Positions 1 to 59,653 of a DNA stretch of 64,000 nucleotides are shown piece after piece. A program made the position numbers and the translations under genes. The notes below the pieces were generated by a model. The model saw only the letters and a list, made by a program, of their open reading frames with translations, had not been told where the DNA came from and ran no database searches. How positions within the stretch are numbered: position 1 is the first letter of the stretch; the number at the start of each line of letters is the position of its first letter. Source of the DNA: Neoechinorhynchus agilis (lineage: Eukaryota > Animalia > Acanthocephala); the NCBI GenBank assembly GCA_051530055.1, contig CM121343.1, forward strand, positions 94,389 to 158,388, read 5' to 3'.

Positions 1-1010
1 AATCATCGCAAACCTACTAAATCCAGCCATTTGACTGACCAATTTGTCGAGTCGTTCGACCTAATATATTCGTTTTGATGAGTGTTTTGAGTTAGAGTGC
101 GAAACAATTCTGAAGAAGGCTAGCGGCCGAAAATTCAATTCGCCAATCCTACAATAAATGTGGAACTTATATTCAACTTACTTTTTCGTGGTCATTATCA
201 AACAAATGTAGAAATGAGGCCTGAGTCCCTGTGGTTCCTTTGACTCCAAGGAATTTTAAAGAATCACGGACTCGTTGAAAGTTCTCTAGATCCGTTACAA
301 GATCCTGGAGCCACATACAAAACCTTTTTCCAACCGTTGTTGGTTGAGCAGGCCTGCATCGAATCGTAACGAAAAATCAAGATCATCTTTGAGTTACATA
401 CTGCATGTGAGTATATCCCAATGTTGGAACACATCGATAACTTACACTGAGGCATGCAAGTGTACGGATGCATTTAGCGAGCTTTTTGGATAGAAGCTGC
501 AAAAAGAGTACAATAGGACCAAAAAAAGAACATACCTTCCTTAAAAGAATGTTAAAACCATCACGAATCGCCATTAGATCCTAAAAATGAATGTAACTCT
601 ATCAAATAGTCCATTTTTGGGCTCACTCCGTTATCGACCACAAACGCTGAGGTGGCACCCAAGTGGATTATTGGAGCGGCTCTCGGACACGCCTTTGAAA
701 ACACGGCAATGTGAGCCATCACATCATGCCTACGTTTCTGTTCTTCTACTCTAGCGGCTTCGAAATCAATATTAGTCAAATTTGATTCCATCTCAGCTAT
801 CTGCTCGTCGCTAATTCGAACACCCAGTTGCTTTTCGGCCTTAGCTAACCAAAGCCATAACCGTCGCCAAGTAGAAAATTTCTGAGCATCACTGAAATTT
901 CTTGACATTTCAGCGCTGCAGTACCGAGAAACTAAAGGAGTTCGATATTTCCATACTTCTTCGATCACTGCTGTATCCCTTTGATTTTCAACCATGGTAA
1001 AAGCACTCAT
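1..1010 (-). CDS. ADSL: Adenylosuccinate lyase, 5' portion (at least 5 exons; continues beyond the left edge)
   Basis: Spliced translation gives [86 protein letters not shown], the eukaryotic ADSL N-terminal half, with GT-AG introns. Confidence 0.96.
106..140 (+). ncRNA. Minimal type I hammerhead ribozyme motif in an ADSL intron (antisense to ADSL)
   Basis: AAUU-CUGAAGA-A-GGCU(agc)GGCC-GAAA-AUUC-AAUU: intact core, 4-bp stem I, 4-bp stem II, palindromic AAUU stem III, UUC cleavage triplet. Confidence 0.75.
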
Positions 1011-1753
1011 CCGAGTCTGAAAAAAAGATCAACACTATGAATTTACCACTCAGTCGAATTCTAAAAGACCTTTAAAGGAAAATCGTTTTCGAAGACATTC
1101 TATGATCTTACCAGTTCGAAGGACTTACCTCGTGGATATTCGGACAGCTTCCCCATTTCATCAAAAAATCCCCAACTCACTGATGCTACTCCGGAAGTCT
1201 TACAACTCACGATAATTTTGTCAAATGAAAAAGCGCCATGAGTTTAAATTTATTTGAACTCATGGATTATTGGTGCTTAGATGGATTTCATTCGGCATTG
1301 AGCTTTTTGGTCGCAGGACCTCGAAGATGCAATCAATCACGAAATTTTTGTTCCATTCACATTATTCCGATAATCTGCTTTCGAAAACACGAATTGAACA
1401 CCTCGACAAAGTCTTTAATGGAAAAATCGTCAAAGTCTTAATATCCGAAATCGAAGGAGAATCGTAGGAATCTTATAAACCTCAAAATCTATCGCTCTCG
1501 GTCCAATCTTGGAAATGGATCCAGAAAGATTTATTACAGATCGCTCCACAAATTTACAGATGATGGAATTAATTTGAGAAACTTTTACTCGAAAGTATGA
1601 AAATTATAATATTTTGTTGCATTTTTTTGTTTGAAAAATAAATTTCTTATTTAAAGTCCTCGACTTGACATTGCTGATGTGTCACGGTCCCTCGAGATCT
1701 GGTCTCAGGGAAAGGAATTGTCCCGAACACCATTTCGCCGCGGCCACAGCTCC

Positions 1754-2170
1754 GTGAGTTTGCAATAGGGTTCGGCCCTGAGCCCATTCTTGTTCACGAT
1801 CGTAACGTCCTAGGAAATGCGGAAAGAGAAATGAACCCGCCATGGACGATTTGGTACTCACAGCCATGGACGCGCTCAGAAATTTGCTGGGGAACAGCGA
1901 TTAGAAGGCAAAGGATTGAGAATGAGCAGGCAAGGAACTCAGACCGAAAAGATCTTCAAATATTTGGGCAGCCTGTTGAACATGCAATGTGAGCTCGAAC
2001 CAGAGATCGGACAACTGGAGGAAGACAACAGGCATCCTTTGCGATAAGCGTCTTTCGAACAAGCTCAAACGGCGGATGTACAGCGACCCGCCATGATCCA
2101 CGGAGCAGAGAAGTGGGATACGAAGAAGGAAGACGTTCAACGATTAGCCGTCAACGAAATGCGGATTGTC
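1754..2170 (+). mobile_element. Decayed RTE-clade non-LTR retrotransposon reverse-transcriptase fragment
   Basis: Collinear RT motifs with stops and frameshifts: VSLQ*GSALSPFLFTIV, DDLVL, FKYLGSLL, WRKTTGILCDKRLSNKLKRRMY, RPAMIHGAEKWDTKKEDVQRLAVNEMR. Confidence 0.85.
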
Positions 2171-4475
2171 GATCCGAAAGGCCATTAAGGAAGCTGCCGA
2201 ACAATCACAACGTATGGGTAATGCGGATTATCTCCTTCGAATGAAGTTTTCTAAAGCGCTAAAAAGCAAACACTTTGACTGATCTCATCTATTTATGATT
2301 GCGAAAACGGACGTATCGATTGTCTCCTTTAATTATTCATCTCGACTACTACCATAAATATTTTAGAGAAATACAATGTTATGCAACCGAATGTTTGAAT
2401 GGAATTTTCCAAAGACAATATGAAATCTATTTGTATATTTTATTAAAAAAAGATGGTAGTAGGAGATAAACAAGCCCGGTTGCGTTCTTGTTGAACTTTA
2501 CTCATGTGAGGAATCATGGGTTTGAATTTTATTCAGATTGGAAATCATTTTATGCGAGTAGGCCTCAAATCGCTGAAATTGTGAATTACTTGAACAGCGT
2601 AATTTTTTAACCCATAAATAATAACAAACATTTAATAATAAAGTGATTTGATACCTGTCGATGATAGGAGAATATATAACTCTTTTTTTCTGTAAATAGA
2701 AGAGTTCCAGAAAAAATATGGGACAATGCAATGAAATATCGGGATTTTATCATATCCGAACTTTGATATTTTATCAGTCATCGACGTGGTTTTTCAACTG
2801 ATGTCCGAAGGATATGGAAATTGTAAATGGTACCACTCGTAAGTTGTTGTGTGAGGTCTAAATCATGATTATTTTTAAGGTTTGATTGAGTAACAACAGT
2901 ATTTAGCTTTTGAGGCGAACTATATTGACTGCACAACGAAGAAACTTTCGACTTGGAGGAGTTTGCTCGTGCATGAGATGATGTGATTAAATCATTCTAG
3001 TTTGGCAAATTTTAATTCGATGAGTTCAGTTGTAGAGCCATGTAAATCTGCAGCCAAATGGTCTGATTAAGATTGAAGTATCTTTAAGGATTAATTCATT
3101 TCGAAACTGAGCACCAACTTTTTACCACGAAAAGTTCTATCCCACCTATTTTAGCATAAAATCGCAGGCGGATTATGAAATAAGAACGTAAAAGGTTCTT
3201 TAACTATACTTTATTTCGACTATTTAAAAAACTTAACATATAAATGGCAGTACGCATTCCAATCTCCCTTTTGCGTTGTTCTATGATTAATATAATCTTC
3301 ATTTATTTTCGGTTATAGCTCAAAAGCACATTTGTTGACTACCGAAATTTTGATGTGCATACCTCAGGGTGGAGAAAAGTTATAAACAACATTAACGAAA
3401 TTCTTTAACATTCTAAATTCATGTATGCACCATTTTGTAACCTTCAAGGAATTTTTTTCAGTTGTCGAAATGCTGTTTTTCCAATCATCGATTGTAATTT
3501 TGTTCCAATTTTCATTTTTTTACGATAGAATGAAATTTATCAGGGCACTACACGACTTCGTTTTCATTTTTCGCATCAGTGAGTCCGTTGATGCTGTTTT
3601 TGTAGTCTAAATTTAAATTCCACGAGTACAATTTACCCAAGTTCCGTTCGTGCCATAAAAGAAGTAATATTCTTCAACATGTAAAGCGAAATTCTTACTC
3701 TCAGGTCTTGTATGATTTCGCTTTTTAAATTTTTTACACACTCTAACCAATTTTTTACCAAAAATGTAGTATTGATTCATGAATTAGGACTAGTATTCGT
3801 CTGGCTTAATCACGGTAACTCTCCACCTCAAGCACTCTAAATTCTAAAGTATACTATTTGGCATTTTTGAGCCTTGTTAGTAATGAATTTTTCTTAGTGG
3901 TGGGTTCTCCCTTTAGCACTCTTATATTTAATGTATACTTTTAGCATTGCATGCCACCCTAATCGAAACGGTTTCAAAAAAGTTATGTGCCGCCATAGTG
4001 AACTGTGGTGGCTGCCATGCGACTGTTGAGATACCGTCAAGAGAAAAATTTCGTAATCAGTAAGACCAATTATGGCAGTAAAAGGACTTTAAATTTTAGG
4101 AATCAATTTTTACCTCTTTTTATGACAAGCGAAAATTGAGGCTGGATGCTAATGAGTTCGAACAACATTAAAGCTTATTCTAGCTCTTTTAAAATCTCGT
4201 ACCGTAAATTTAAGTAAAAAAGACTGTCTTATGTGTGTGTTTTCGCTTTTCCCCGCTCTTTGACCAGTGGTTTCTCATCACATCTTGATATTAGATAGTG
4301 GATACTGGCCGGAATAATGTCATTTGCTGATGATTTTACGGAATTAAATAAATCACAATTGCCACAATCGAGAAGAGATGCCATCAATTTGTCGGCATCC
4401 AAGGAGGTATTCCTTACTCATGCTCTATTGAAAATGAAGGAAGCTAAAAAAAGGTAAAGAAATTAATCATTATTG

Positions 4476-4701
4476 TTTCAATTTCACCTAGCGATATTCA
4501 CTCAGAAAATTGATTTATATTGAAAATTTTCGGCCTTTTCGTTGGCCTTCTTCAGTCAGATCTAGAATGTTTCCGAAGAAAAGTTTCTAGTAAGCTTTGT
4601 AAACTTTTCTTCGGAAACATTCTAGATCTGACCAACGAAAAGGCCGAAAATTTTCAATATAAATCAATTTTCTGAGTGAATATCGCTAGGTGAAATTGAA
4701 A
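4476..4701. repeat. Fold-back (long inverted repeat, ~105-bp arms, 14-nt loop)
   Basis: Arms match almost perfectly. The right arm lacks 9 nt (TGAAGAAGG) present in the reverse complement of the left arm. Confidence 0.9.
4521..4558 (-). ncRNA. Minimal type I hammerhead motif in the left arm of the fold-back
   Basis: UGA-CUGAAGA-A-GGCC(aacgaaaa)GGCC-GAAA-AUUU-UCA: intact core, perfect 4-bp stem II, only a 3-bp stem I. Confidence 0.62.
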
Positions 4702-5316
4702 AAATTAAAGCTAAAAAAAGGTTCGTTATTCCCCCCGATTCGAAAAAACAACTGCTACTTGGTCTTTTTTTGCGTAAATTCACTCGCTTCCATCCAGGAA
4801 AAACAAAAAAAAATCAGAAATAACTCATTCTTTTACTCTAAGATTTTTCGCCCATCCAATGTGCCATAAACCCACCACCAATGAAAGAGAAGGTTTTGAT
4901 GTTTAGCATTCTGGGAAATCGTTCGTAGTCCTACAAGTTTCTAAAACACTTAACTTTTCTCATATAGACGGTTTTGCTGCATGTGATAGAAGTTGCATTT
5001 TTTGCACCAGAATGCAAAGCTCTCAGTTGTGTTCCATGTATTGTAACACTAAAATGCGAGAAGCTTCAACCATCGATTCCGTGTGTCATATATGACGCCC
5101 CCGAGGAGCCCGGTTCCGTCGTTCTGGTACACTGATATTGTCACTGAGCTCCGCAAAGATGGTGATGTCTTTGTAAATTCAGATTACAAAACTAAAGTTT
5201 CTCGATTGTGATCCGCTTTGGCAAAAATCGACCTAAAAATTCACGCACTACAGGAAAAGCGTTTACTTTTTTTTCTCATAAAATATCCATTTTCATTCGT
5301 TCTACTTAGAAATCGA

Positions 5317-19258
<13,942 letters not shown>

Positions 19259-23202: not shown

Positions 23203-24711
23203 GAATGTCCTTCGCATTTTTTTCAACATCGATTCATTAACTCACTAGTTTATAGGATTTTTAACCGGAGTGTTTTCGTGGGGTTTTTTTGTAAATCGAA
23301 ATTAAACCATAGGTTATCGACGATTTAAACCTATAATGGACCAGAATACATCTCTAGACTTTCGAGAAGTAGTGAATTTTTTGATCACGTGTAAAATTGC
23401 AGTATATCTAAAAATTTATGTTAAAAACGAGGAGTTTATACTGCAGTTCCCAGAAAATACGATTGTATAGTTTTCATAATTGAACAAAGTTCATAATCGG
23501 TTATTTATATTCTCATGTTCTTGAAAATCCCTTTAAATAAGAGCGGGGCAGTAAATTACAACGGTCAAAAGTCCACTATATTGAACTTGTTCAAAAAAAG
23601 AAGAATTTCATCTACCTTTAGAAGACAACTAGCCGTTGTACTACTCAGAGTAGCAATATAAAAAGGTTACCTAATAACTTTGAAGTTAAACGCAAATTTC
23701 GTCTAATTGTCACCAGGAAAACTCTGGTCAGCGCCGAACGCCCATGACCGTACGTTTAAGAGTTTGTACATCTTTCTGGATCCTTAGATCCCCCGAGGAG
23801 GCGCAAACTCAAAATCGGGCAGCCGCCTGGTTAAAAAAGTAAAAAAAAATATGTATAAATTGCAATCGATATTGATTTAAACGGAGACACGGGAATGTTG
23901 GTTACGAATTAAAGTTTGAGTTTGACACTGTATGGACACGCCCATCAAGGATACTTAATAGCCTTTCGTTTCGTCCGCTCATTATCAGATGCGGCGTCCA
24001 TTTCACGTCTTGCTTCGTCTGTCGCTTTGATATCCGAGCTCCAGGTACCGCCATCTAAAATTATGGACATTTTATGTTAAAGATCGATGAGAAAGGAGTG
24101 GTGGACTTGGTGATCTCTCGATGAAATGTGTAGGCGAAGAAGGTGTTGTTCGACTACAGTATCAGCAGATGTGTTTATTGAGTAAATCGAATTGGGAAGG
24201 ATCCACATCAATAAATTCCCTAAGCAGACAACAAAATCAGGGTTATTTCAAGTCTCTTTTAATCAGACGGCTGAGATTGATTCGGGATGTGACAATATTA
24301 GACTTCCGTCCTCGGTCGCTGCATGCACCACGGCTCGTTTATTGACACCCTCTGTGCCGCCCCTCTGGTTTCAACAACACTTTTGCGTCCGCCTTGTGTA
24401 CTCGAGAATAGACACATTTAACTTATTAACACGCACTATTGTGCCAGTGGAGAACCGTGTTTAAGGGGTGTGGAGTCTCGTATCCTGTTTTTGATTGAAA
24501 TTTGCTTTAATTTACTCCTCCTCTCCAACCTCTTTCATTTGCCGTCACAGTATTACACCGATTTCCTCCTTTTAGACCGCTTTCTCCAAAGGAAAACATC
24601 AATGATCGTCCAACCAACCTGAATTTGCCGCTCAACAACTCCAATTGCATCTCCAAATTGATCAAAAGAGAAACCTTTTCGTCCTCACCAACATCTTCTT
24701 CTTCTACCGAC

Positions 24712-31736: not shown

Positions 31737-31812
31737 TTTTTTCTATAGGTCCAACAATGGACAGCGCCCATCCATTCCCTTAAATAAATGTACAGAGAAA
31801 GAATGGGATGAA

Positions 31813-31820
31813 TGACGTCA
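31813..31820. promoter_or_regulatory. CRE/ATF palindrome TGACGTCA 77 bp upstream of the MCM5 ATG
   Basis: Perfect 8-bp palindrome in the short unique stretch between the MCM5 start and the satellite. Confidence 0.3.
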
Positions 31821-31821
31821 C

Positions 31822-34800
31822 CTCCGTCCTCACGTTATGTCGAGAACGTTGAGAGTTTGTGAGGTTTGGTCTCTGCTAGGTTCATTTCAAGTTATGATAT
31901 CCAAGAAGATTGGGCAGTATGGATCCAATCACAGGGAATCAATATTACTTTTAATCAAAATATTCGGTAAAGCTTATAAATACGATCTCCCACGTTATGT
32001 CGAATTATTGAACAAAATGCGGGTTTTCGAAGTGGATTACGGGTCCCGTCGAGTAAGGGAACGTTGGTGGTTATTGTTTCTAGGAGAGTTTGTGAGGTTG
32101 GGTCTCTCCTCAGGTTCATTTCAAGTTATGATATTTAAGAAGATTGGGCAGTATGGATCCAATCACAGGGAATCAATATTACTTTTAATCAAAATATTCG
32201 GTAAAGCTTATAAATTCGTCCACACGTTATGTCGAATTATTGAACAAAGAATACGGGTTTTTTCGAAGTGGATTACGGGTCCGGTCGAGTAAGGGAACGT
32301 TGGTGGTTATTGTTTCTAGGAGAGTGTGAGTTATAGTCTCTCCTCGGGTTCATTTCAAGTTATGATATCAAGAAGATTGGGCAGTATGGATCCAATCACA
32401 GGGAATCAATATTACTTTCAATCAAAATATTCGGTAAAGCATATAAATTCGTCCTCACGTTATGTCGAATTATTGAACAAAGAATACGGGTTTTTTCGAA
32501 GTGGATTACGGGTCCGGTCGTGTAAGGGAACGTTGGTGGTTATTGTTTCTAGGAGAGTGTGAGGTTGGGTCTCTCCTCAGGTTCATTTGAAGTTATGATA
32601 TCCAAGAAGATTGGGCAGTATGGATCCAATCACAGGGAATCAATATTACTTTCAATCAAAATATTCGGTAAAGCATATAAATTCGTCCTCACGTTATGTC
32701 GAATTATTGAACAAAGAATACGGGTTTTTTCGAAGTGGATTACGGGTCCCGTCGAGTAAGGGAACGTTGGTGGTTATTGTTTCTAGGAGAGTTTGTGAGG
32801 TTGGGTCTCTGCTCAGGTTCATTTCAAGTTATGATATCCAAGAAGATTGGGCAGTATGGATCCAATCACAGGGAATCAATATTACTTTCAATCAAAATAT
32901 TCGGTAAAGCATATAAATTCGTCCTCACGTTATGTCGAATTATTGAACAAAGAATACGGGTTTTTTCGAAGTGGATTACGGGTCCGGTCGAGTAAGGGAA
33001 CGTTGGTGGTTATTGTTTCTAGGAGAGTTTGTGAGGTTGGGTCTCTCCTCAGGTTCATTTCAAGTTATGATATCCAAGAAGATTGGGCAGTATGGATCCA
33101 ATCACAGGGAATCAATATTACTTTCAATCAAAATATTCGGTAAAGCTTATAAATTCGTCCTCACGTTATGTCGAATTATTGAACAAAGAATACGGGTTTT
33201 TTCGAAGTGGATTACGGGTCCGGTCGTGTAAGGGAACGTTGGTGGTTATTGTTTCTAGGAGAGTGTGAGGTTGGGTCTCTCCTCAGGTTCATTTCAAGTT
33301 ATGATATCCAAGAAGATTGGGCAGTATGGATCCAATCACAGGGAATCAATATTACTTTCAATCAAAATATTCGGTAAAGCATATAAATTTCGTCCTCACG
33401 TTATGTCGAATTATTGAACAAAGAATACGGGTTTTTTCGAAGTGGATTACGGGTCCCGTCGAGTAAGGGAACGTTGGTGGTTATTGTTTCTAGGAGAGTG
33501 TGAGGTTGGGTCTCTCCTCAGGTTCATTTCAAGTTATGATATCCAAGAAGATTGGGCAGTATGGATCCAATCACAGGGAATCAATATTACTTTTAATCAA
33601 AATATTCGGTAAAGCATATAAATTCGTCCTCACGTTATGTCGAATTATTGAACAAAGAATACGGGTTTTTTCGAAGTGGATTACGGGTCCGGTCGTGTAA
33701 GGGAACGTTGGTGGTTATTGTTTCTAGGAGAGTGTGAGGTTGGGTCTCTCCTCAGGTTCATTTCAAGTTATGATATCCAAGAAGATTGGGCAGTATGGAT
33801 CCAATCACAGGGAATCAATATTACTTTTAATCAAAATATTCGGTAAAGCATATAAATTCGTCCTCACGTTATGTCGAATTATTGAACAAAGAATACGGGT
33901 TTTTTCGAAGTGGATTACGGGTCCGGTCGTGTAAGGGAACGTTGGTGGTTATTGTTTCTAGGAGAGTGTGAGGTTGGGTCTCTCCTAGGTTCATTTCAAG
34001 TTATGATATCCAAGAAGATTGGGCAGTATGGATCCAATCACAGGGAATCAATATTACTTTTAATCAAAATATTCGGTAAAGCATATAAATACGTCCTCAC
34101 GTTATGTCGAATTATTGAACAAAGAATACGGGTTTTCGAAGTGGATTACGGGTCCGGTCGTGTTAAGGAACGTTGGTGGTTATTGTTTCTAGAGAGTGTG
34201 AGGTTGGGTCTCTCCTCAGGTTCATTTCAAGTTATGATATCCAAGAAGATTGGGCAGTATGGATCCAATCACAGGGAATCAATATTACTTTTAATCAAAA
34301 TATTCGGTAAAGCTTATAAATTCGTCCTCACGTTATGTCGAATTATTGAACAAAGAATACGGGTTTTTTCGAAGTGGATTACGGGTCCCGTCGTGTAAGG
34401 GAGCGTTGGTGGTTATTGTTTCTAGGAGAGTGTGAGGTTGGGTCTCTCCTCAGGTTCATTTCAAGTTATGATATCCAAGAAGATTGGGCAGTATGGATCC
34501 AATCACAGGGAATCAATATTACTTTCAATCAAAATATTCGGTAAAGCTTATAAATTCGTCCTCACGTTATGTCGAATTATTGAACAAAGAATACGGGTTT
34601 TTTCGAAGTGGATTACGGGTCCCGTCGAGTAAGGGAACGTTGGTGGTTATTGTTTCTAGGAGAGTTTGTGAGGTTGGGTCTCTGCTCAGGTTCATTTCAA
34701 GTTATGATATCCAAGAAGATTGGGCAGTATGGATCCAATCACAGGGAATCAATATTACTTTTAATCAAAATATTCGGTAAAGCTTATAAATTCGTCCACA

Positions 34801-35720
34801 CGTTATGTCGAATTATTGAACAAAGAATACGGGTTTTTTCGAAGTGGATTACGGGTCCCGTCGTGTAAGGGAACGTTGGTGGTTATTGTTTCTAGGAGAG
34901 TGTGAGGTTGGGTCTCTCCTCAGGTTCATTTCAAGTTATGATATTTAAGAAGATTGGGCAGTATGGATCCAATCACAGGGAATCAATATTACTTTTAATC
35001 AAAATATTCGGTAAAGCTTATAAATTCGTCCACACGTTATGTCGAATTATTGAACAAAGAATACGGGTTTTTTCGAAGTGGATTACGGGTCCGGTCGTGT
35101 AAGGGAACGTTGGTGGTTATTGTTTCTAGGAGAGTGTGAGGTTGGGTCTCTCCTCAGGTTCATTTCGAGTTATGATATCCAAGAAATTGGGCAGTATGGA
35201 TCAGTACGGGAATCAATATTACTTTTAATCAAAATATTCGGTAAAGCTTATAAATTCGTCCACACGTTATGTCGAATTATTGAACAAAGAATACGGGTTT
35301 TTCGAAGTGGATTACGGGTCCCGTCGAGTAAGGGAACGTTGGTGGTTATTGTTTCTAGGAGAGTGTGAGGTTTGGGTCTCTCTCCTCGGGTTCATTTCAA
35401 GTTATGATATCCAAGAAGATTGGAGCGTGTGGATTAATCACAGGGAATCAATATTACATTATCAAATATTCGGTAAAGCATATAAATTCGTCCACACGTT
35501 ATGTCGAATTATTGAACAAAGAATACGGGTTTTTTCGAAGTGGATTACGGGTCCGGTCGTGTTAAGGAACGTTGGTGGTTATTGTTTCAAGAGAGTGTGA
35601 GGTTTGGTCTCTGCTCAGGTTCATTTCAAGTTATGATATCCAAGAAGATTGGGCAGTATGGATTCAATCACAGGGAATCAATATTACTTTCAATCAAAAT
35701 ATTCGGTAAAGCATATAAAT
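31822..35720. repeat. Satellite array, 234-236-bp unit, ~16-17 copies
   Basis: Unit gggcagtatggatccaatcacagggaatc... recurs at 236- or 234-bp spacing (32611, 32847, 33083; 33500, 33734); edge copies are more diverged. Confidence 0.97.
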
Positions 35721-36270
35721 TTCCTCCGTTTCAATGCAAAGGATTTGTGATTGGGAAAGGTCGCAAAAGACGATGATAAAGTAAAGCTTGAGTAAAATTT
35801 AGAGAGATCGAGCGAAGGGATTCCTAAATGTCCGAGGTATTTGAAGAGGTCGATTTTAAAGGTATTGCGTTTGAGGGAAAGTGTAATGTGCGGATCCCAT
35901 TTTAGGTTTGATTGAAATTGGAGACCCAGAATCATGAGAAGGCGATTCGTTGGATGTCATTTGAAGGATCGGGTGAATGAGGGGATCATTTCGAAACATT
36001 TAGGAAAATTCAGGTAGAATTTGTGATTGGTGTAGAAATCTTTAAAGTTGATGATTTCGTTAGATGTTAAGGAGAGGGAGAGGTGGAAGTGTGATTGAGT
36101 GATGGGGTAAGAAAAGTTTAGAGTGTGATGAGAGAAAAGAAGTGGTGACAAGACGGAACCTTGAAGAACTCCTTTGGTGATCGAGGAGATAGAACGGCAG
36201 TGAATGTGTTGTTTGCGATTGTGAAGATAAGATTCGAGCCAGTGAATCTGCCACGAATTTAGGCGTCAAA
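35690..36270 (-). mobile_element. Decayed L2/CR1-group LINE RT C-terminal fragment running into the satellite
   Basis: KFVADSL (degenerate YxDD motif), YLNFPKCFEMIPSFTR, ILGLQFQSNLKWDPHI..LFKYLGHLGIPSLDLSKFY are collinear, with frameshifts. Confidence 0.75.
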
Positions 36271-38853: not shown

Positions 38854-40784
38854 TCATTCAATGTCTTGAAGGTTGAATATAAGTTGACACTGTTTAGATC
38901 TGGAGGCAGAAGCATTGAAGTTGCTGGCGCATGAAGTGACAGGTCTGAAGGAGAGATATTAGAGGTATAAATATATTGATAAATCGGTCAATGGTGGTGG
39001 TGGTAATAATGCTGCGATCAATGGTTCTTCTCTAAAAAGCACTGTAATTATATTTTCTAAAATAATAAGAGAAAATCAATTGGGCAAGAGCGACTCTATG
39101 GAGAGGAACAAATTTATGTTACAAGTCAACGGGTTGTTGATTTTGCAAATTATTTGCGGCTGGCTGATTGGTGGATTTTACAGTGTAAGATTAGTAAGGG
39201 TTGTTAGCGATGTGGTGTTTTGCTTTGTCGACTGTAATCTGATAATCTTCTACACATATTCCCCCCTCCGGTCTCAGAATTCATGCACGTGGTTCCAATC
39301 AATGTGCTAGTGCGAGACGGGAGAATACGGACTAGAGAAGACATTTCGATTCCAATGCATCGCAGACTGCTGCGCAAGTGTGGACAACAAATAATGCATA
39401 CAGAATGAAAGAAAAGATCGCGACAAATTCTAATTGCTCCAGCGATGTCTTTTAGACTATTGAATAAAAGGAGAGCGAGGGAAGTGTATCGGGTATAGAG
39501 CTCTGGTTATGCATTTTAATCCCGATTCCTTCCGCATGACAGACAAGTGCAAGATGATTAGCGCTGATTTCGCTGTCCCTTTCCCTATCTCGTGCCTCGA
39601 AATGATTACTGCTACACAAGCATCTACACAGCAGTAGCAACAACATTGGCATCCAACGGCACCGCCAAAAATATACATGTATTATTATGCACGGCTTATT
39701 TACTTTTGTCAAGCCAAATATACCGTGAAAATGATGTCCTTGAACAGAACTTGGCTCAGATATGCAACAAAGAAAACACAGCTAAGGACACTTCTTCGTT
39801 GGAATTAAAATCAGTTTTAGTGGCAATGGCATTTGAAAAGTTCATGGAGACGATCCAAAGAAGCAAAACAACAAGCGTTCCAGGAACGACAAAATGGATT
39901 TCTCTATAATTTGAAAAGTACTCTATAGAAATTATTTCCCATTGGTGTCAAGAAAATCTTAATATAAAAGGACGCCGATGTCAGTAATCACGAAATACAA
40001 GTTGACACCATACAAAAGCGGTTCTCGATCTGGACGTGGCGTTTATTGCTGCGACAGCCGGTGCACCGGGTGCTTATAAGGAGACCAGATTTGGTTTACA
40101 CACAAGGAGAGATAGCAAAGGTTTAGAGTAGAAGGTCCACTGTTGGAAACGGTCGATGTAAATATAGATACCATGGGTCAACAGTGAGACGACCACGAAT
40201 AGCAGGGTTGAAGAATCAAAGATTTGCACAAGATAATCTCCTGGTCACCTGTGGGCTCTGCACAAGGAATTGTTTGCACACGTTTTACTGCCACAACTAA
40301 CAATTGAATCTGACGGTGGCAAGATCGCGGCTTTTTTTCCTTATCGTTTCAAAATATTGTGCTGACCAATCAGAGTCAAGATGCTGCGCTGTTTGCGCGC
40401 TGGTTGGTCGATTTTTCAAAAGATTAAGGTCTCATTACTCCTCTAAATTTTTGGTAATATCAAATAGGTGTTATTCTTGGATATTCTAAGAGGCGAGTCG
40501 TCACGGTAATCGGTAATGCAATTATGGGCAAAGCGTACACATACTGCATGTGTAATCGATCGTCACAGGATTTATGTGTCCTAAACGACGGAATCCTTGT
40601 CTTTGGTGGCTATGATTTATATGGCGATCTCAAACACAACAAGAAAAGCATTCATGCACGATACACCTTATGTTTATTTATACAAATGAAAATTATCCAC
40701 GGAATCGCTTTTCACTCTTTGGAAGATTGATCGAATAGATTGAGTGTGAGAGATTCACTTTGCAGCAACATTTAGCTTACAAAA

Positions 40785-45970: not shown

Positions 45971-47711
45971 TTGGATGGCAATCCAATTTTCGACCCGGAA
46001 ATGTGATATACATCTTAACGTGACCTATTTCGGTAAATGTCTTATCCCAGTTTTTGTCCCTGTGATAAAAATACCATCATTTTCGTGCTGCTTTACCCAT
46101 CCAGATATATAGAACACTCGTATCACTCACTTGATGGTCTTTTTTATTTGGTGATTAGAAATAGAGATTTATTTATTGATTCCCTTTCACACAATATGTC
46201 GTCCGTCTCGTCGGACGTCTTCAGGTTGTACGTTGAAGTAACAAACTTGCGAAACAAAAAGTCAATATTGTGTAAAAGGGAATCAATAAATTAATCTCTA
46301 TTTCTCATCGCCAAGATCCTTATTCAGCGGAGATATACTTATCTGTTAAGCTTATTGAAAGTCTTTAAATTTATACTGCCTTTTCATATTTTAACAAATA
46401 ACCGCCATAACCTAAAATCCGCAATTTTAATCAGTGAATGTTCGCTTCCAGATTATCATTTCCCGAGGGAAATTTATTCGTTTCATTAGAAAATCCATCG
46501 TATCCAGACAGTTCAATTATGCTGCTTCGTGAATTTCGAATGGGATGGAATTCTTATTAAATCTATCTAAAACGCATTAGTTTAAACGCATTAAGGATTT
46601 AGCTTCTTGAAACGGAAGCGAGTATCAAACTCCTTTCTGGTATGTTTCATCAGCGTCGCACCAACTGAGGTTTCAGTGGTATTGCCACTTAAGATTAATT
46701 TTAAATCGGTTCAGGAATTTGAGTTCCGCCCACTTATTCGCGAAATAGTTTTATATTTAGTAGTTTGCATATTTCAGAAAAATTATTCGACAAACAATTG
46801 AAAAATTGAGCCATATATTTTGCAGCTTGTGAGTATCGAAGGGATGATTCGAGCGGAAAAGGTGACAGGAAACGTTCGTTCCCTTGGGTATTCATTTCGG
46901 TGTATTTTCGAAACGTAATTTCTGATGCAACGATATCGATAATTTCGATTGCATATCAACTTGCGATCAGCGCCCGCGGAATAGCACACACACAAAATGC
47001 TCTAGTGGCGTTTTTTTAGGAATTTCGGAATGTCTCTCAAATAGCGTAATATGGATGGCTAGATGGATGAATCGAACCTAATGTGTCATCTTGTCTTACC
47101 AAATAATGATCGAACTAGGGACTTGACTCTTAAATTAATTTGGTTTCTTTGTAGGTTTTCGTTTTTACTAATAAGAAGTATAGATGCATTTTCTTTTTAA
47201 GATTACTCTTCAATATTGTTTATAATACAATAAGTCCTTCGATTTTGTCATCCGATGAAAAGGCTGATTAAAATTTCAATTTTAAAACAAATCAAAGATC
47301 AGATTTCTTACTTGAATATAAACATTTCTTTACTTTTAGCAGCTTTGATAATCAATTTATTGCTGATATTTTTGCAATGGAGTGCAAAGCATTACTACGA
47401 TAAATTTTTTATTGGTTGTCGCCGACACATTTTAAATTCGACCCAGGAAAATAAACCTTTTATTGGATCATCTATATACTGGATCCTTTAAAAAATAAAG
47501 TATTATTATCACAATTTGTAATTTATATGCTATCTTTTCAAATGCGTTTTCTTAGTAGGGTTATTTAAAGCAATAACTTTTCGATTTCAGTACGATAAAA
47601 GGACAATGTTATTCATTTGGAGTCGCTGCGTTGTCAATGAGTTTGTATCTGACCTTTAATGTATTTGTACCTTAAAATCATCGATAAAAAATCCTTCGGA
47701 ATAATCAAATT

Positions 47712-49143: not shown

Positions 49144-49182
49144 ACTTCAAATTTTCGACGCCTTGCGTCTTCGTCAGGAAGC
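49144..49182 (-). ncRNA. Minimal type I hammerhead ribozyme (left arm)
   Basis: GCUUC-CUGACGA-A-GACGC(aag)GCGUC-GAAA-AUUU-GAAGU: 5-bp stems I and II. Confidence 0.8.
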
Positions 49183-49329
49183 TTTTCTTCGGTTATCTGA
49201 AAAGGAATCAGAGGAGGGTTACGAGCAGCAAGGACGGACACAACGAGGCAGAGGGGATGCTCAATAAGAGGGATGAGCTGACGGACAGCGTTGCCCTCCG
49301 CTGATTCCTTTTCAGATAACCGAAGAAAA

Positions 49330-49368
49330 GCTTCCTGACGAAGACGCAAGACGTCGAAAATTTGAAGC
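49330..49368 (+). ncRNA. Minimal type I hammerhead ribozyme (right arm)
   Basis: GCUUC-CUGACGA-A-GACG(caaga)CGUC-GAAA-AUUU-GAAGC: perfect 5-bp stem I. Confidence 0.8.
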
Positions 49369-53559: not shown

Positions 53560-54260
53560 CAAAGCGGTTTTTTTGTCTAGTTGGATGAAATAACCGTTTT
53601 TGTTTTTGAGCAACGGCGGAAAACGGAATCTGAGTCATTTTATACACACGCACACACACTGCATTACTAGGTCCAGACGATCGTTAAAAAAACAATGTAG
53701 CCTGACCTTTAAACTTTTTTTTACTCAATGACAGCCACATTCATTGTCAAGACACATTACTTCAAGCACCGTCACCCATACATTTCTCAAAATAAAAGGG
53801 AGTGCACCGGTTTGTGGTTCCTGAACTCAATCACTGCGAAATGTATTCTTCCTATTTACTACCAGGCGTAAATCTATCATCATCATACGGTTCAAAACCA
53901 GGTTCAAGCCAGGCTACTGCATTTCTCAGAAACTATGTTGTTATGCTCCCTCCTGGACGACCAATTTTCGGTGGAACAACGTATGTATTACTGCGTTCCC
54001 ACTAAGTGGCAGTCCTCTTAAATCATGTAAATTCAGATACGTGAGTGTGCCTTCTAATCCATCGAACTACATGAAGCAGAGGTCGGGTTTCAATCGGTTT
54101 GATACTCATGCGACACAGGAAAATGGGCCTCTAATAAGGATGGCCTTCTTACCACAATAATAAAAAAAATTAGCGTATTTATACGTCTGATTTCTGTATC
54201 GTGGAATAATTTATCTTTAATGAGTTAATGGATTGTTTTCAGCCTTTCATAACAAATTTT

Positions 54261-54299
54261 AGGCCGACATTTCGGAGTTTTATTCCTTCTTCAGGGCCC
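54261..54299 (-). ncRNA. Minimal type I hammerhead ribozyme, left member of an inverted pair (54261-54383)
   Basis: GGGCC-CUGAAGA-A-GGA(auaaaac)UCC-GAAA-UGUC-GGCCU, GUC triplet. The partner at 54345-54383 (+) has C3 changed to U and a stem I mismatch. Confidence 0.78.
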
Positions 54300-55101
54300 T
54301 GAAAACATGCGACAAAAAAACTTAGAAACAATCGCGTGTTTTCAGGAACTTGAAGAAGGAATAAAACTCCGAAATATCGGTCCAAGGCATCGGGTGAACA
54401 TTTAAGCCAAACTAATGTTACTCTGGACTCTCAATTGACATCCACATACTAATACATTGGTTGTTATTTGTGAATCACATGATCCATCAAAAAATGCCTA
54501 GAAAGCAATTGGTTACGAATTTATTTACAATGAGATTTACTACAATATGGTATCTTAATTTCATTCTTCTGATAGCCCAGAAGTGAAAGGGACCTCCCTC
54601 ACACGATAGTCACCGGAGTTTGATGTTGAAGCAATGAAGGAGTGGAATAGTTCCTGAGATGGTATAGATTTGATGGCCTCTCCATCAGATAAGCCCGCCA
54701 AAACCGCCAACCCATGGTTATCATATGAGTACCCCCCCCCCCAAAGACCACCATTTGCCCTGAACCAGTAACGATAGGCTTCAACGTCCTACTCATAAAA
54801 TGTTGTAGTAATGATAGCGAACTCTTGCTTGTCACTTTGATCAAACACGTCCCGTAAAGAATGAAACGTAGTCCTTCCAGCTGACTCGACGGCATACAGT
54901 TCCTCGATGAGGATCGGGTTCCAGATAGTCAGCACCAGATTAGCCGGTTGATGAGGTGCATTGATTAAATTTCAGGACAGTGTGGCAGCTATCCTACCAT
55001 CCATACGATGCGTCCGAGTTTATAATAATAACACGTTTATTTGTGAGTTAACAAAGCAAAGGACTCATGTATCTTTGGGTTCTCAAGAACACTCGAATTC
55101 G

Positions 55102-55170
55102 TAGGAGAGATTGTTAGGTTGGGTCTTCCCTCCGGTTCATATTAATTTAAATTTTGATGACCAAACAGAT
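55102..55170 (+). repeat. Diverged solitary fragment of the 235-bp satellite unit
   Basis: taggagagattgttaggttgggtcttccctccggttcat resembles taggagagtttgtgaggttgggtctctcctcaggttcat. Confidence 0.6.
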
Positions 55171-55235
55171 CTTGAACGTTGTTTCGTTTTTATGGTGGAA
55201 TTGTTTTAGTCTGTTCACTGTGGTTCACTCAGTTA

Positions 55236-55440
55236 CCATCGTCGAAAGGACGGATACAGCGTTCCCCTTGCAAAGCTGGACTTATGTTTGGCAGAAGAAA
55301 TTATCCTGTCTTCGGATCGTCAGTGATTTGTCTGAGTCTTTTAGACATTTGTTTGACCAGGTCCTGCGCCGCGGTTCCGAACGACCGTAGCGTCGCAGCG
55401 CCAACGAAAACGAAATAATGATTTCGACCCGGGTCCAATT
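55236..55440 (-). mobile_element. Decayed CRE-clade non-LTR retrotransposon 3' end
   Basis: HYFVFVGAATLRSFGTAAQDLVKQMSKRLRQITDDPKTG*FLLPNISPALQG parallels the C-terminus of the intact fragment at 58545-58985. Confidence 0.6.
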
Positions 55441-57414
55441 GTTTCGTCTTTTTGCGATCCTCTTTCTAGCAACACAATACCTTTTGGAGGTATCTTTTGT
55501 GACCATGATTTCCAGAACTAGATAAATACTCAATTATATAGATAAGAAGGGATTAACTTAGACGAATACAGCAGCCACATGAATTCAAGGCAATTACTTT
55601 ATCCGCTACAAACGATTCTAACAAGCACGTGAATTTTATACCTTTGAAAAGTACCTTCCATTGCAGCTTAGATGTTGAAAACAAGATTAATCCACGGGCG
55701 GTGTTGAAAAGGCGATGGATGCAAGGAAATGATGGAGAGCATCCTTCTAAAATAGTGTTGTCCTTTTGGGAGATAAATGAAGTTTAGAATCAAAATCATC
55801 GTTTCAGCGGAGAAAAGTAGCGTATGAACTAAGAAATGATTTATGCGAATCGCTGCAAAAATGGTGTAAAAAATTATTTTAAATAAAATGTTCCTTTCGT
55901 AAATTCATGCTGCAATCGGTAAAATTGTGCCAACCTGGATGACTAATTGCAACGGTAAGAGGAATTCAATCACTGAAACACGTTATCAAGGAAGCTAATT
56001 CCTAAGAAATTCTCAGGCGCCGTGTGCATTCTTGAAGGCGAAAATTGGCTGTGAGGCTCGATTTTCGTTTAATCTTAGAGGGAGTTCTGAAGATGAAACC
56101 CGAGGAATTATAGTGTTTTTAAATTTACTCTATTGCAAAGAATAAAAACCAATACCCAAATGGCGTTTTTAAAGTTATCGAAAATTGGTTTATAAACCTG
56201 TGCTTTCATGGTTCTTAAGTCTCGGATATAAAAAGAGTTCTACACAATACCACTGTTTTCTGGTTGATAGTATCTAAAGTAAGAATTTACGATACGTGCT
56301 ATCGCAAGTAAACAAAACATTCTTTTTAGAGCAATAAAGTACAATTGGACTCTAATCAAATCGTTTAACTCCTGACAAAACAAACAATGACCCAGTGTCG
56401 GGATAATAATAACACTTTCTATTCAGTTTCCAATCGGGATTTTCCACATTAGAAAACCTTCCGCTGTTCCTTGCTGCATTGATACACGATATTGATCATA
56501 AAAGACGGTAGTTCATTGGATTGAGTTCTACGATATCTAGTCCCTGTTTAAAGTTAAATAGGGCTTTTCCTTGTAAAAATGTCTCAGATAACGACAATCC
56601 TTAATTCGTATCATTATTTTTCCTGGTTAGAGGTGCGCAAATTGCAGATTTAACTATATCGACCTCTCTTCTTCACTATTCTACTTTGTCGTTAATTCAA
56701 AATCGTCTTCGTCTCGGCTATTCGATAAGTCTCGCAGTCCTTGGTAATGGCGGGTTTCTCCCATGCGAACTGTCCAAGGAGGAGCGGTTCAAACAATGAT
56801 AAAACCGTGATGGAGAACTACAACTCATCACTCTCGTGGAAAATTCTACTTCGCCCCAAAGGGGATTTTCGAATGATAAGGCAAATGACGATCGATGCTG
56901 TAACCGTTGGGCAAAGAGCAATCACGATCAATACTCAAGTTGATTTTACACTGAATATCCCATATAAATGACCTGAAAATTGAATTGTTCGTGTATTTAT
57001 AAGGCGGATAAATTGAAGTAATCTATTAATTCAATCGGAAATTTCAGCACTATAAAAAAATAGAAATTATTGATGCGGACGAGAAGTCCAAATTTCAAAT
57101 AGCAGACATTTGAGCGTTTTAAATGCAACTCACCTCCAGAGCAAATTATGCATTAGAGCGCATAAAATTATGAGCCAGGTTACTACATCCCGAGTCCTCG
57201 TCTAAGGCGACGGCATGAAGCCACACCGATCTCTTTCTTCAGAGAAGTTATTGAATCACTTAGACTCTGGTCAACTGGAATTTAGCCCTGAATCCCTGCT
57301 TCAGGGTGGATGGGTTCGATTCCACGATCGCCAATGACGCACAACCAAAAAGGAACGAACTACTGCTGAAGGGAGCACCGGGGGAGGTATGTGAGGATCG
57401 CGAGGGATGCGTAC

Positions 57415-58050
57415 AAAACCCCGGATTTATCCTAAATGAACCTTCCCAAAATCGATTTATTTATTTTTGTAGCCTAAATTTCTACAAATTTGCATTAGAT
57501 TTTTAGCTCTTGCGCTGGATATAGAATTTGTGGGATCTCAAAACGTTTAAAGCTTCGATTCCGGCATTTGTCTCATAACAAAACCGGGAAAGTTTATTTT
57601 TAGTGCTGATGATATTTTATTCGCGTTTTTTAGAGAATAAAAAATAGAAATTATAACATTACCGATTAAATCGATAACGATTAAAAAGTTTTCAAAAACG
57701 CCGATAGATATCGTCTTCGAAAAACCCCGGATTTATCCTAAATGAACTTTCCCAAAATCGATTTATTTATTTTTGTAGTCTAAATTTCTACAAATTTGCA
57801 TTAGATTTTTAGCTCTTTCGCTGGATATAGAATTTGTGGGACCTCAAAACGTTTAAAGCTTCGATTCCGGCATTTGTCTCATAACAAAACCGGGAAAATT
57901 TATTTTTAGTGCTGATGATATTTTATTCGCGTTTTTTTAGAGAATAAAAAATAAAAATTATCGCATTACCGATTAAGTCGATAACGATTCAAGAAAAAAA
58001 CCCGGTTGTATCCTAAATGAAACATTCCTAAATCGATCCATTTATTTTCT
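57415..58050. repeat. Tandem duplication, ~306-bp unit, two copies plus a degenerate third start
   Basis: aaaaccccggatttatcctaaatgaa at 57415 and 57721; degenerate at 57997. Confidence 0.85.
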
Positions 58051-58495
58051 TGAATGTTTTGATCCTCGAATACGTCTTGCCAACTGCAAATCTTTGGGTA
58101 TGATGGTAACTCTTTTCGCATGGATTGCGCAGATTTGTGTCTTCGAAGCTGCCATCCAAAAAATATTCCGTTGCCTCTTTCGGGAGCGTAAAGCGCAGCC
58201 CCTTGCCAGCGCATCAGTACGGAATGCTGGCTATCTCTCTTGCGAGTCGCTGGATAAGTCGACGGCTTATCAAGAGGTCCGTCGATCGTTTCAAACGTCT
58301 TATCTCCTTATTTGCCACTGTCCCTGGCTTAAACCTGTACTTCTTGCGCGTCTTAGTCTTGATTGTCGTCTTTGCTTGCTTGTCTGGACTACCACGTTGC
58401 GGAAGGACACTTCCCGTCGTTTCCTCAACAGTCGGTTGCTTATTGGTCATTGTTACTTTTGTTGCTACTTTAACTAAAAAAGGATTTTTGTACAT
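58042..58495 (-). pseudogene. Histone H3-variant / cenH3-like pseudogene
   Basis: [31 protein letters not shown], in-frame TGA in loop 1, [20 protein letters not shown], frameshift, then [23 protein letters not shown]-tail unrelated to ARTKQTAR; no introns. Confidence 0.88.
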
Positions 58496-58544
58496 TTAAA
58501 ATGTCAGCATTTCTGATTCAATCTTTTAGTTTTCATTATATCCC

Positions 58545-58985
58545 TCATTCCGCGCCACTCCAATGGGCCGTTGTTATCACGCTTGCCGTGTTGCCCCGTT
58601 GAATAGCCACACTCAAGCGTTGGATGAGGTAGTTCCTTTGTCTGTGATCTCCGCTGGCTTTTATGAGTAGTCGACCTATCTCCGCGCAAAATTTCATCGC
58701 CGAAACTCCAAACGCCCCATTTGTCTCCACACCGAAAGGAAGGAATAGGTGAGTCTTTTCCAGCTCAGCGTATTTCGCTGTCTTCCTCCTTTCGACCGCC
58801 GTCGCAGCTCCTCCCGGTCCTGATATTGCATCACTTCGGTTGGAGGGTGCTAACGAATCGACGCATGTGGCGTCCCAAATAAGGCATTTTCCTTCTTTCC
58901 ATGGGAATATGGTCATCCCATCGGGACGTTTGCCATCTGAGCGACACAGGTGGTTCGGCTCTATGACGATATTTTCGTGTGCGTA
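58545..58985 (-). mobile_element. 5'-truncated CRE-clade non-LTR retrotransposon, restriction-like endonuclease domain
   Basis: EPNHLCRSDGKRPDGMTIFPWKEGKCLIWDATCVDSLAPS..FLPFGVETNGAFG..QRLSVAIQRGNTASV (PD-(D/E)xK-type RLE). Confidence 0.85.
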
Positions 58986-59309
58986 ATTAAACCTGTTTTT
59001 TCTAACAGGAAGTCGGCGATCCAGCTGTGTTTATGGTTAATATTGTATTAAGGTTTTTATGTTCAATAAAATGTGCCTAATTATTTGGGTCTGATCATTT
59101 CTGCGTATGACGATCTTTATATTGTTTCAACCTCATTTCTCAGAAATAAGTGTCTTAGTGTACTTAGCTGAAATGAATAAGTTGATTTTGTTTATCATGG
59201 TTTCTCTCATGATTAATACTGCACACTTTGTTAGCTCTCCGGAATAAAGACTGTACGTAATTTAATGGCTTGAGGCGAGTTGGTTTTCCACGATGTGATT
59301 TACCAACAG

Positions 59310-59576
59310 ATTCCAAGTTTCCGGTGTATGGAAGTGTTTACTTGACGACCTGTTTTCTTCACTCAAACGTCGAGGATAGTTTTTGTCTTTGTAAGAGATT
59401 GACCGTTGAGTTGTCTTGTCTTTATTGTTGAATAGATGCGTGGATTTGAGCACGCAGAAAACGTCGTCGACGTATCGCGACCATTTTATCAGAAATTCTA
59501 CTATAGACTTAATGCTCCCAATTCGACACGTGAAGATCCGCTAATGCGTACCCTAAGGGGACCCCACCGCCACTCC
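59310..59576 (-). mobile_element. Penelope-like element RT remnant
   Basis: GVAVGSP/PLGYALADLHV..WE, WSRYVDDVFCVL, LDV*VKK..NTSIHRK, with frameshifts. Confidence 0.8.
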
Positions 59577-59611
59577 GTCAATTTACTCACATATTAAAAA
59601 ACTTACAAACA

Positions 59612-59653
59612 ATCGCTGAAGAAGATCCGAGATAGTGGATCGAAATATCCAAT
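59612..59653 (+). ncRNA. Minimal type I hammerhead motif between two Penelope remnants
   Basis: AUCG-CUGAAGA-A-GAUCC(gagauagu)GGAUC-GAAA-UAUC-CAAU: perfect 5-bp stem II, AUC triplet, one stem I mismatch. Confidence 0.75.

Follow-up and report, generated by a model that had tools for sequence, protein, structure and literature searches.

We studied a stretch of 64,000 nucleotides from the genome of the acanthocephalan Neoechinorhynchus agilis (GenBank assembly GCA_051530055.1, contig CM121343.1, positions 94,389 to 158,388 of the forward strand). This whole stretch is called the window below. It contains several host genes, tandem arrays, and a dispersed set of hammerhead ribozyme (HHR) motifs, which are the subject of this report. 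The motifs are of the minimal kind (min-HHR) known from Penelope-like elements (PLEs), and 13 recognisable copies lie within the 64 kb, which is a locally high density. We found no earlier account of such motifs for N. agilis in the literature; the HHR-bearing PLE families mentioned by Craig et al. (2021; PMC8557442) are from another acanthocephalan, Pomphorhynchus laevis, only.

Hammerhead motifs and their fold

The descriptor used in the search contained CUGANGA, zero or one extra nucleotide, a helix II with a minimum stem of 3 bp and a minimum loop of 3 nt, GAA, a self-complementary A-NN-U, and a cleavage-site nucleotide H that is not G. Pairing in helix II was imposed by the descriptor; pairing in helix I was counted and not demanded. 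Eight matches were obtained in the window, identical with the eight intact cores listed in a preliminary description of this DNA, which had been made from the sequence alone. The intact cores are as follows.

110-140 (+), intact HHR core
4521-4555 (-), intact HHR core
11881-11920 (-), intact HHR core
18624-18659 (+), intact HHR core
49144-49177 (-), intact HHR core
49335-49368 (+), intact HHR core
54261-54294 (-), intact HHR core
59616-59650 (+), intact HHR core

All eight matches used the option of one extra nucleotide, and none used the option of zero. In dinucleotide-preserving shuffles of the window (n = 300), the mean number of matches was 0.04 and the maximum was 2, corresponding to an excess of about 200-fold in the real sequence. 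A single inverted repeat, with 94% identical arms, contains both the 49144 and the 49335 site, one per arm, so that the eight intact sites represent seven sequence families. When one mismatch was allowed at the conserved positions, only three further matches were obtained.

18571-18602 (-), one-mismatch HHR, A9 -> G
46193-46224 (-), one-mismatch HHR, A14 -> C
54350-54378 (+), one-mismatch HHR, C3 -> U

These correspond to three of the four sites (18565, 46190, and 54345) that had been described as degenerate. We regard the three as mirror arms of intact copies, a point that the preliminary description had missed. The fourth site, at about 57070, has several core mismatches; it was missed by the relaxed descriptor and scored less than 10 bits with the covariance model described below.

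A permissive pattern might find chance matches in AT-rich DNA, and the silence of Rfam would agree with this explanation. The Rfam hammerhead models (Hammerhead_1, Hammerhead_3, Hammerhead_II, HH9, and HH10) gave no match in the whole window at the gathering score or at E <= 10, and at E <= 10 no hammerhead family was found even in a 351-nt slice holding two intact copies. However, this silence is expected and uninformative, because the Rfam hammerhead models include the helix III hairpin, which is absent by definition from min-HHR. Chance is refuted by the excess over the shuffles, by the helix I pairing and the extra nucleotide, neither of which was imposed, and by the transfer of the covariance model to P. 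laevis (see below), and we give it virtually no credence. The HHR motifs in the window are real and far beyond chance expectation.

The eight intact and three one-mismatch sequences were aligned with MAFFT. In this 11-sequence alignment, 84.7% of the helix cells were paired, compared with 50% when the partners were shuffled. Helix I pairs in 76% of the cells, with compensatory changes at all five of its pairs, and helix II pairs in 95%, with changes on both sides at three of its four pairs; both-side changes were thus observed at eight of the nine pairs. The covariation score was 0.84 versus 0.23 in shuffles, and none of 500 shuffles attained 0.84. RNAalifold independently predicted both helices. 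Both helices covary between the HHR families, in agreement with the covariation of stems I and II that had been noticed before.

The core boxes CUGANGA and GAAA are fully intact in eight copies and carry one substitution in the other three, and the cleavage-site nucleotide is not G. The closing pair G10.1-C11.1 is G-C in 10 of the 11 copies and G-U in one, and helix II is 3-6 bp long. An extra unpaired nucleotide follows A9 (before 10.1) in all 11 copies, though the descriptor allowed none. There is no helix III loop, and positions 15.1-15.2-16.2-16.1 are self-complementary; the tetrads are AAUU in four copies, AUAU in four, ACGU in two, and AUGU, a wobble version, in one. The extra nucleotide and the palindromic or wobble stem III of 4 nt had both been correctly recognised in the preliminary description.

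The covariance model built from the alignment gave about 38-51 bits for the 11 copies and 17 bits or less for the rest of the window with filters off. In four of the eight intact copies, the predicted minimum-free-energy fold of the monomer consists of helix I and helix II with an open core. RNAcofold of homodimers was also tried; it gave trivial domain-swapped duplexes only, which say nothing about an active dimer.

The MCM5 locus of P. laevis (WNNJ02000644.1, 36.5 kb) was kept out of the training of the covariance model. The introns of P. laevis MCM5 contain an inverted HHR pair, 16584-16635 (-) and 16670-16721 (+), in which the mirror arm carries G10.1 -> A and the intact arm has a 47-nt tail, and another intact HHR was found in the locus at 24130-24179 (-). 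The three P. laevis HHRs score 30-38 bits; each carries the extra base, and the tetrad is AUAU or AAUU. One of the P. laevis families is similar to the N. agilis copy at 11881 in helix I and the tail (AAUUG-CUGAAGA ... GAAAUAUU-CAAUU), with a different helix II.

Anatomy and decay of the copies

The HHR loci in the window are listed below, with scores from the covariance model.

102..147 (+), intact min-HHR; helix I AAUU/AAUU, CUGAAGA-A, helix II GGCU/GGCC, GAA-AAUU-C; 37.8 bits
4472..4705, head-to-head inverted pair (4.5-kb pair); arms 4472-4545 and 4632-4705 (74 nt), 99% complementary
11837..11950 (-), intact min-HHR (HHR 11881-11927); helix I of 7 bp, helix III AUAU, 51-nt tail; 48 bits
13020..13143 (+), decayed copy of the 18.6-kb family; core lost, A-UGAUGAUGAA ... 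GGUUCGUAGAAC
18528..18746, head-to-head inverted pair (18.6-kb pair); arms 18528-18602 and 18624-18698 (75 nt), 96%
46162..46300 (-), near-intact HHR (46193-46224); A14 -> C, 31-nt tail; 37.9 bits
49097..49415, head-to-head inverted pair (49-kb pair); 127-nt arms, 94% identical, 65-nt centre, tails of 52 nt
54259..54385, head-to-head inverted pair (54.3-kb pair); intact HHR 54261-54299 (-), helix III AUGU; 48.2 bits
59608..59660 (+), HHR with intact core (the copy at 59612); 6-bp helix II, helix III AUAU; 44.5 bits

Four loci were identified by a repeat finder as head-to-head inverted repeats in which the ribozymes point outward, and two others (46162-46300 and 11837-11950) have a shorter inverted partner. 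An inverted partner was found at almost every locus that is readable on both sides. All the hammerhead pairs in the window are inverted, and none is in direct tandem. The sequence after the cleavage site is 5-95 nt in each copy (tails of about 5, 31, 43, 48, 51, and 52 nt), and the sequence before the ribozyme varies by locus from 0 to about 65 nt. The units are about 75-220 nt long and have no coding sequence.

In the 4.5-kb pair, the minus arm has an intact HHR (4521-4558, 51.1 bits), and the plus arm lacks the 10 nt CUGAAGAAGG; the arms are otherwise identical. The centre of this pair (4552-4635) forms a perfect 31-bp hairpin that was matched by the Rfam families MIR7696, mir-4659, and mir-722 at 43-53 bits, all below the gathering score. 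The hairpin is simply the centre of a PLE inverted pair, and it illustrates the mimicry of microRNA precursors.

In the 18.6-kb pair, the plus arm has an intact HHR (18620-18659, helix III ACGU) and a tail about 50 nt longer than that of the minus arm, whose HHR (18571-18602) carries A9 -> G. This extension is genuine element sequence, because the decayed copy at 13020-13143 also has it; the tail and extension of that copy are 88% identical to 18678-18746. We also considered that the 13-kb and 18.6-kb loci share a junction and represent one composite foldback unit; this idea was dropped, as shuffled sequences gave left-arm alignment scores of 28.7 on average and up to 46, compared with 37 for the real loci.

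Each arm of the 49-kb pair has an intact HHR, 49144-49182 (-) and 49330-49368 (+), with scores of 50.9 and 51.5 bits. In the 54.3-kb pair, the mirror arm (54345-54383 (+), 42.7 bits) carries C3 -> U and a weakened helix I, and the similarity stops about 5 nt past the cleavage site. At 46162-46300, a 36-nt inverted copy of the tail precedes the HHR and breaks off inside helix III. In front of the copy at 11881, 13 nt of the end of its tail recur in inverted orientation (GAGTATGTGGAAG / CTTCCACATACTC). In the copy at 59612, the contiguous helix I is only 1 bp.

Foldback transposons or DNA transposons of the miniature inverted-repeat transposable element (MITE) type, with terminal inverted repeats that are fortuitously hammerhead-like, would also produce such structures. 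Most of the loci are inverted repeats with short centres, and the locus at 46162-46300, with its 36-nt terminal inverted repeats, is MITE-like. However, the arms of different loci have only the ribozyme core and the covarying helices in common, and no terminal-repeat sequence. The arms are also unequal in length, and a tail extension or the 10-nt deletion can affect one arm only. The ends of the four pairs show no target-site duplications. In addition, the partner arm of one copy is a fragment of a reverse transcriptase (RT; see below), and inverted 5'-truncated partners are documented for PLEs (PMC8557442). An origin of this type is thus very improbable.

Comparison of one arm with the other within a pair dates the changes to the time after insertion. 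In the 49-kb pair, two differences were found in the ribozyme of about 39 nt and 3-5 in the 88-nt flank. In the 18.6-kb pair, all three arm differences, A9 -> G among them, fall in the ribozyme, and in the 54.3-kb pair, five differences (C3 -> U included) fall in the ribozyme versus one in the flank. The sole arm difference in the 4.5-kb pair is the deletion of 10 nt of the core. When the three substitution-bearing pairs were pooled, there were about 10 substitutions per about 118 nt of HHR versus about 5 per about 150-250 nt of flank. Three of the four full pairs have one arm with a core-inactivating change; in the remaining pair, the changes in both HHRs lie outside the core. The ribozyme region is not protected relative to the flanks; the direction is consistent across the pairs, and the numbers are small. 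The preliminary description had missed that mutations strike the ribozyme at least as often as the flanks, which indicates decay and not a population of maintained ribozymes.

Intact copies on the same strand are at least 4.9 kb apart, and neighbours mostly have different helix III tetrads. The intermolecular helix III thus cannot form in cis. Because there is no tandem and no same-strand partner, and because core mutations are accumulating, the copies in the window are probably inert relics.

A reverse transcriptase fragment and the origin of the copies

A motif scan of the six-frame translation of the window revealed an RT-like site beside the copy at 59612. An intact open reading frame (ORF) lies nearby.

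59245..59594 (-), decayed RT fragment with stops and a frameshift; IDGVAVGSP*G..., RYVDDVF, ILDV*V...TSIHRK
58548-59030 (-), intact ORF of 161 aa, containing AVERRKTAKYAEL … FLPFGVETNGAFG

The RT fragment and the hammerhead are head-to-head, with the truncated 5' end of the fragment 13 nt from the start of the HHR at 59608 (+); the fragment is one long arm. To classify the fragment, we used as a lure a PLE-like sequence modelled on a common invertebrate family with RT and GIY-YIG domains. The lure matched 2,895 proteins with up to 86% identity, and a PLE-type RT profile was built from the 120 of these matches that were listed. With this profile, the fragment was the best match in the whole window (E = 1e-3 over 2,130 windows of the scan). 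When its two frames were joined, the match was colinear across motifs B to E with E = 4.5e-6. In a genomic example of this RT family, the RT runs on into a GIY-YIG-like motif (VVYKFSCGRCNATYYGETCRHL), and Pfam confirmed RVT_1 in the reference element. We take the RT fragment as a supportive rather than conclusive link of the copy at 59612 to a PLE-like source.

Another RT remnant, of the long interspersed nuclear element (LINE) type, lies at about 39200-39800 (-) (KGVLQGSVLSPLLF; Pfam RVT_1, E = 0.0055, below the cut-off). It is unrelated to the 59.5-kb fragment, and the PLE-type RT profile did not match it. The 161-aa ORF was tried as the missing endonuclease and rejected, as it has no GIY-YIG motif and no Pfam match; it presumably resembles a domain of other invertebrate retroelements.

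From these observations, we consider it likely (with a probability of roughly 0.8) that the HHRs are short, 5'-truncated insertions of canonical hammerhead-bearing PLEs, or of RNAs mobilised by the RT/endonuclease of PLEs. Each copy would retain the 3'-terminal module only, namely the min-HHR, the few to about 65 nt that precede it, and a tail of 5-95 nt. The PLE enzyme would nick and prime on both target strands, with reverse transcription starting shortly downstream of the hammerhead, and the outcome of an insertion would therefore often be an inverted pair, made of two truncated cDNAs in head-to-head junction. The hammerhead itself would be selected in the active master elements, in which tandem motifs may build a shared helix III and cleave, possibly with the aid of protein. 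The covariation between families would then exist because of selection in the master elements, and not because of selection on the copies in the window.

Published results agree with this scheme. PLE insertions are strongly 5'-truncated, often with an adjacent inverted 5'-truncated copy, and have a tail of 30-40 bp at one end (Craig et al. 2021; PMC8557442). The purified PLE protein of an Anolis element nicks and extends both DNA strands in vitro, and reverse transcription starts within the RNA, about 90 nt downstream of where the hammerhead cuts (Frangieh et al. 2024; PMC11167929). In the same system, the hammerhead needs the protein for cleavage, and insertion in vitro can proceed without the hammerhead. 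Taken together, the two studies predict short 3'-terminal fragments with a ribozyme near the 3' end, paired head-to-head and sometimes extended on one side only.

Several points weigh against an origin from PLEs. No full-length PLE, with an ORF for RT and GIY-YIG flanked by pseudo-long terminal repeats (pLTRs), is present in the window, and thus no HHR family can be mapped onto the pLTR of an autonomous element. A scan of the reference PLE locus with the covariance model gave no hammerhead, and hence no independent link from RT to HHR. The RT fragment is very decayed and was recognised only via the profile obtained with the lure sequence: a word-indexed protein search gave no scoring match, Pfam gave no RVT_1, and phmmer against 1.8 billion representatives gave one low-complexity match only. 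In the reference element, Pfam gave no GIY-YIG on the truncated C-terminus, and the assignment of the RT family to PLEs thus depends partly on our reading of a GIY-YIG-like motif by eye. The lack of visible target-site duplications at the four pairs and the small counts underlying the decay argument also belong here, as does the length of helix II, 3-6 bp compared with 7-8 bp reported for Schistosoma.

Genomic context and comparison with known systems

The host genes in the window were recognised via Pfam or by eye. Those neighbouring the hammerheads, and the two arrays that resemble HHR tails, are as follows.

176-1028 (-), exons of adenylosuccinate lyase
about 5.2 to 17 kb (+), exons of a voltage-gated cation channel
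6991-8747, tandem array of about 8 units of 168 nt; starts with a 107-nt variant and has internal palindromic arms
14182-16301, 336-nt tandem array; 5.6 units, 97% identical, with a 60-nt inverted arm pair in each unit

An ORF of 647 aa at 29793-31736 (-) is 100% identical to N. agilis MCM5. Further host genes encode a STRA6-like receptor, a leucine-rich repeat protein, a CASK-like kinase, cathepsin L, a Kunitz protein, and a FoP/CHTOP-like protein. Hammerheads occur only where the window is gene-poor, at 0-19 kb and 46-60 kb, and they are concentrated in the introns and intergenic DNA near gene-dense stretches. The copies at 11881 and 13020 lie between the channel exons, and the copy at 106, immediately left of a minus-strand exon of the lyase gene, is probably between exons. 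The remaining sites are intergenic or not placeable. The earlier statement that the elements colonise host introns is therefore true of the first two copies and probably of the third, and does not extend to the others.

The position of several copies between the ion-channel exons and beside the lyase exon would suit ribozymes that are maintained by the host and act in cis on the pre-mRNAs of the resident genes. However, the copies in introns (11881 and probably 106) and the one upstream (4521) run antisense to the adjacent gene. Constraint is not evident either, given the core-inactivating changes in the full pairs, and monomeric min-HHRs are inactive according to Cervera and de la Peña (2014; PMC4209133). 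The positions are also not conserved between species, because the P. laevis MCM5 introns have the motifs and a covariance model scan of the N. agilis MCM5 region gave no HHR motif. We thus regard a function for the host as scarcely credible.

The preliminary description had suggested retrozyme-like elements. The copies would then be non-autonomous units, similar to retrozymes or to short interspersed nuclear elements (SINEs), that are transcribed in their own right, cleave themselves, perhaps circularise, and are copied by PLE enzymes. Metazoan non-LTR retrozymes are direct tandem repeats of about 170-400 nt with a hammerhead in each unit and circular RNAs (Cervera and de la Peña 2020; PMC7229834), and for the retrozymes of animals, an origin as non-autonomous derivatives of PLEs, from their pLTRs, has been proposed (bioRxiv 10.64898/2026.07.22.740005). 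The very short, non-coding units of the window fit this explanation. The 18.6-kb and 13-kb loci also have an HHR, few upstream nucleotides, and a long tail in common, suggesting a unit that was copied more than once, and the 168-nt and 336-nt arrays are faintly similar to HHR tails. In contrast, no hammerheads in direct tandem were found in the window, and the tandem arrays of 168, 234, 246, and 336 nt gave no covariance-model match above 13.3 bits, the best being inside the 168-nt array. A dimer in cis is precluded by the spacing and the mostly incompatible tetrads described above. The 5' ends vary by locus, as truncation predicts, and the apparent common junction of the 13-kb and 18.6-kb loci is not statistically significant. 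Units of this kind are unlikely, and what the loci display instead is the signature of PLE insertion.

The similarity of the arrays to the hammerhead copies was as follows. An arm of the 168-nt array (...CCTCCTTCGAAATATTTCCAATAAATC) resembles the 3' half and tail of the copies at 59612 and 11881 (GAAAUAUU and CAAUAAA), with no intact core and a score of 13 bits; the satellite may have arisen from an inverted pair of PLE 3' ends. The 336-nt array has weak blastn similarity to the element at 59612 (65-67% over about 95-110 nt, E about 2e-4).

Other repeats were observed near the host genes. A 234-nt tandem array at 31793-35721 (16.5 units, 96% identical) lies directly upstream of MCM5; it has a strong GC skew (+0.27), and ORFs cross its repeats. 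In the FoP/CHTOP-like ORF (Pfam FoP_duplication, E = 8.6e-12), three in-frame 246-nt (82-aa) tandem repeats were found at 61397-62134 (-); their DNA identity of 88-98% suggests a recent exon-internal amplification. A divergent protein similar to histone H3 (Pfam Histone, E = 1.4e-9) is encoded by two overlapping ORFs at 57969-58495 (-), which are either a variant H3 or a pseudogene with a frameshift. Immediately left of these ORFs is a direct repeat of 306 nt (57415-58048).

A more far-reaching idea is that the head-to-head unit of hammerhead and tail (about 150-320 nt) is itself a non-autonomous foldback mini-PLE that propagates in acanthocephalans. A min-HHR with a tail of 30-95 nt would then suffice for the PLE enzyme, and the units might seed satellites and give intronic hairpin RNAs to small-RNA pathways. 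We consider this idea speculative and rather unlikely to be correct.

The copies extend the catalogue of Penelope-type min-HHRs to a second acanthocephalan, N. agilis; the element is of a known kind, and the host is new. They also have consequences for annotation. Rfam misses the min-HHR class, the inverted pairs mimic microRNA precursors and MITEs, and cores that look intact are not equivalent to active ribozymes.

Among the known systems, the SINE-like Sm-alpha elements of Schistosoma carry a hammerhead of the canonical form, in which helix III is a hairpin and loops contact each other; standard models recognise it. Sm-alpha is similar to the present case in that short hammerhead-bearing retroposons are abundant and dispersed in the genome of a parasitic worm. 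It differs in its helix III hairpin; no Rfam hammerhead model matches the copies in the window.

Metazoan retrozymes share with the N. agilis copies the type I hammerheads and the weak palindromic helix III; in retrozymes, such hammerheads work as dimers. They differ in that the hammerheads in the window are never in direct tandem and its tandem arrays have no recognisable hammerhead.

The insertions of PLEs are similar to the present loci in their strong 5' truncation, their head-to-head copies, a 3' end located a few tens of nucleotides downstream of the hammerhead, and the extension that the 18.6-kb pair has on one arm only. The differences are that the window has no ORF-containing copy or direct pLTR pair, that an extension of about 50 nt was found here compared with the tail of 30-40 bp, and that the 54.3-kb copies stop merely about 5 nt past the cleavage site. 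In P. laevis, hammerhead-bearing Neptune and Penelope/Poseidon families exist beside the hammerhead-less Naiad (PMC8557442). In the P. laevis sequence WNNJ02000644.1, a SUI1-domain gene has in one of its introns a Naiad-type PLE fragment at 31447-32731 (-), composed of a GIY-YIG domain at the N-terminus (Pfam, E = 2.4e-5), followed by a Cys-rich linker and the beginning of an RT. The same locus contains a LINE with an EEP endonuclease and RT at about 5.7-8.4 kb.

The min-HHRs of PLEs were defined by Cervera and de la Peña (2014; PMC4209133) and were also treated by Lünse, Weinberg and Breaker (RNA Biol 14:1499, as cited in PMC6765202). According to the former, their topology is type I and lacks a helix III loop, one base between 9 and 10.1 is unpaired, the pair G10.1-C11.1 is conserved, 15.2-16.2 is palindromic, and the many divergent families differ by compensatory changes. 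They occur in thousands of copies per genome. Most are solitary motifs attributed to truncated PLEs, and a few belong to the pLTRs of complete elements; others are 'dual min-HHRs' on opposite strands with a spacing of 100-700 bp. The copies in the window have every one of the sequence-level features, including a helix III tetrad that can pair in a dimer only, the short helix I, and the dispersed divergent families; the preliminary description was thus right in assigning them to the minimal type I hammerheads of PLEs. The present copies differ in their acanthocephalan host, in the extreme shortness of the units, and in the nearly universal inverted partner. These near-universal head-to-head partners are a genomic footprint consistent with the two-strand nick-and-extend reaction of the Anolis element in vitro, and the N. 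agilis genome could be used to test this model on natural insertions.

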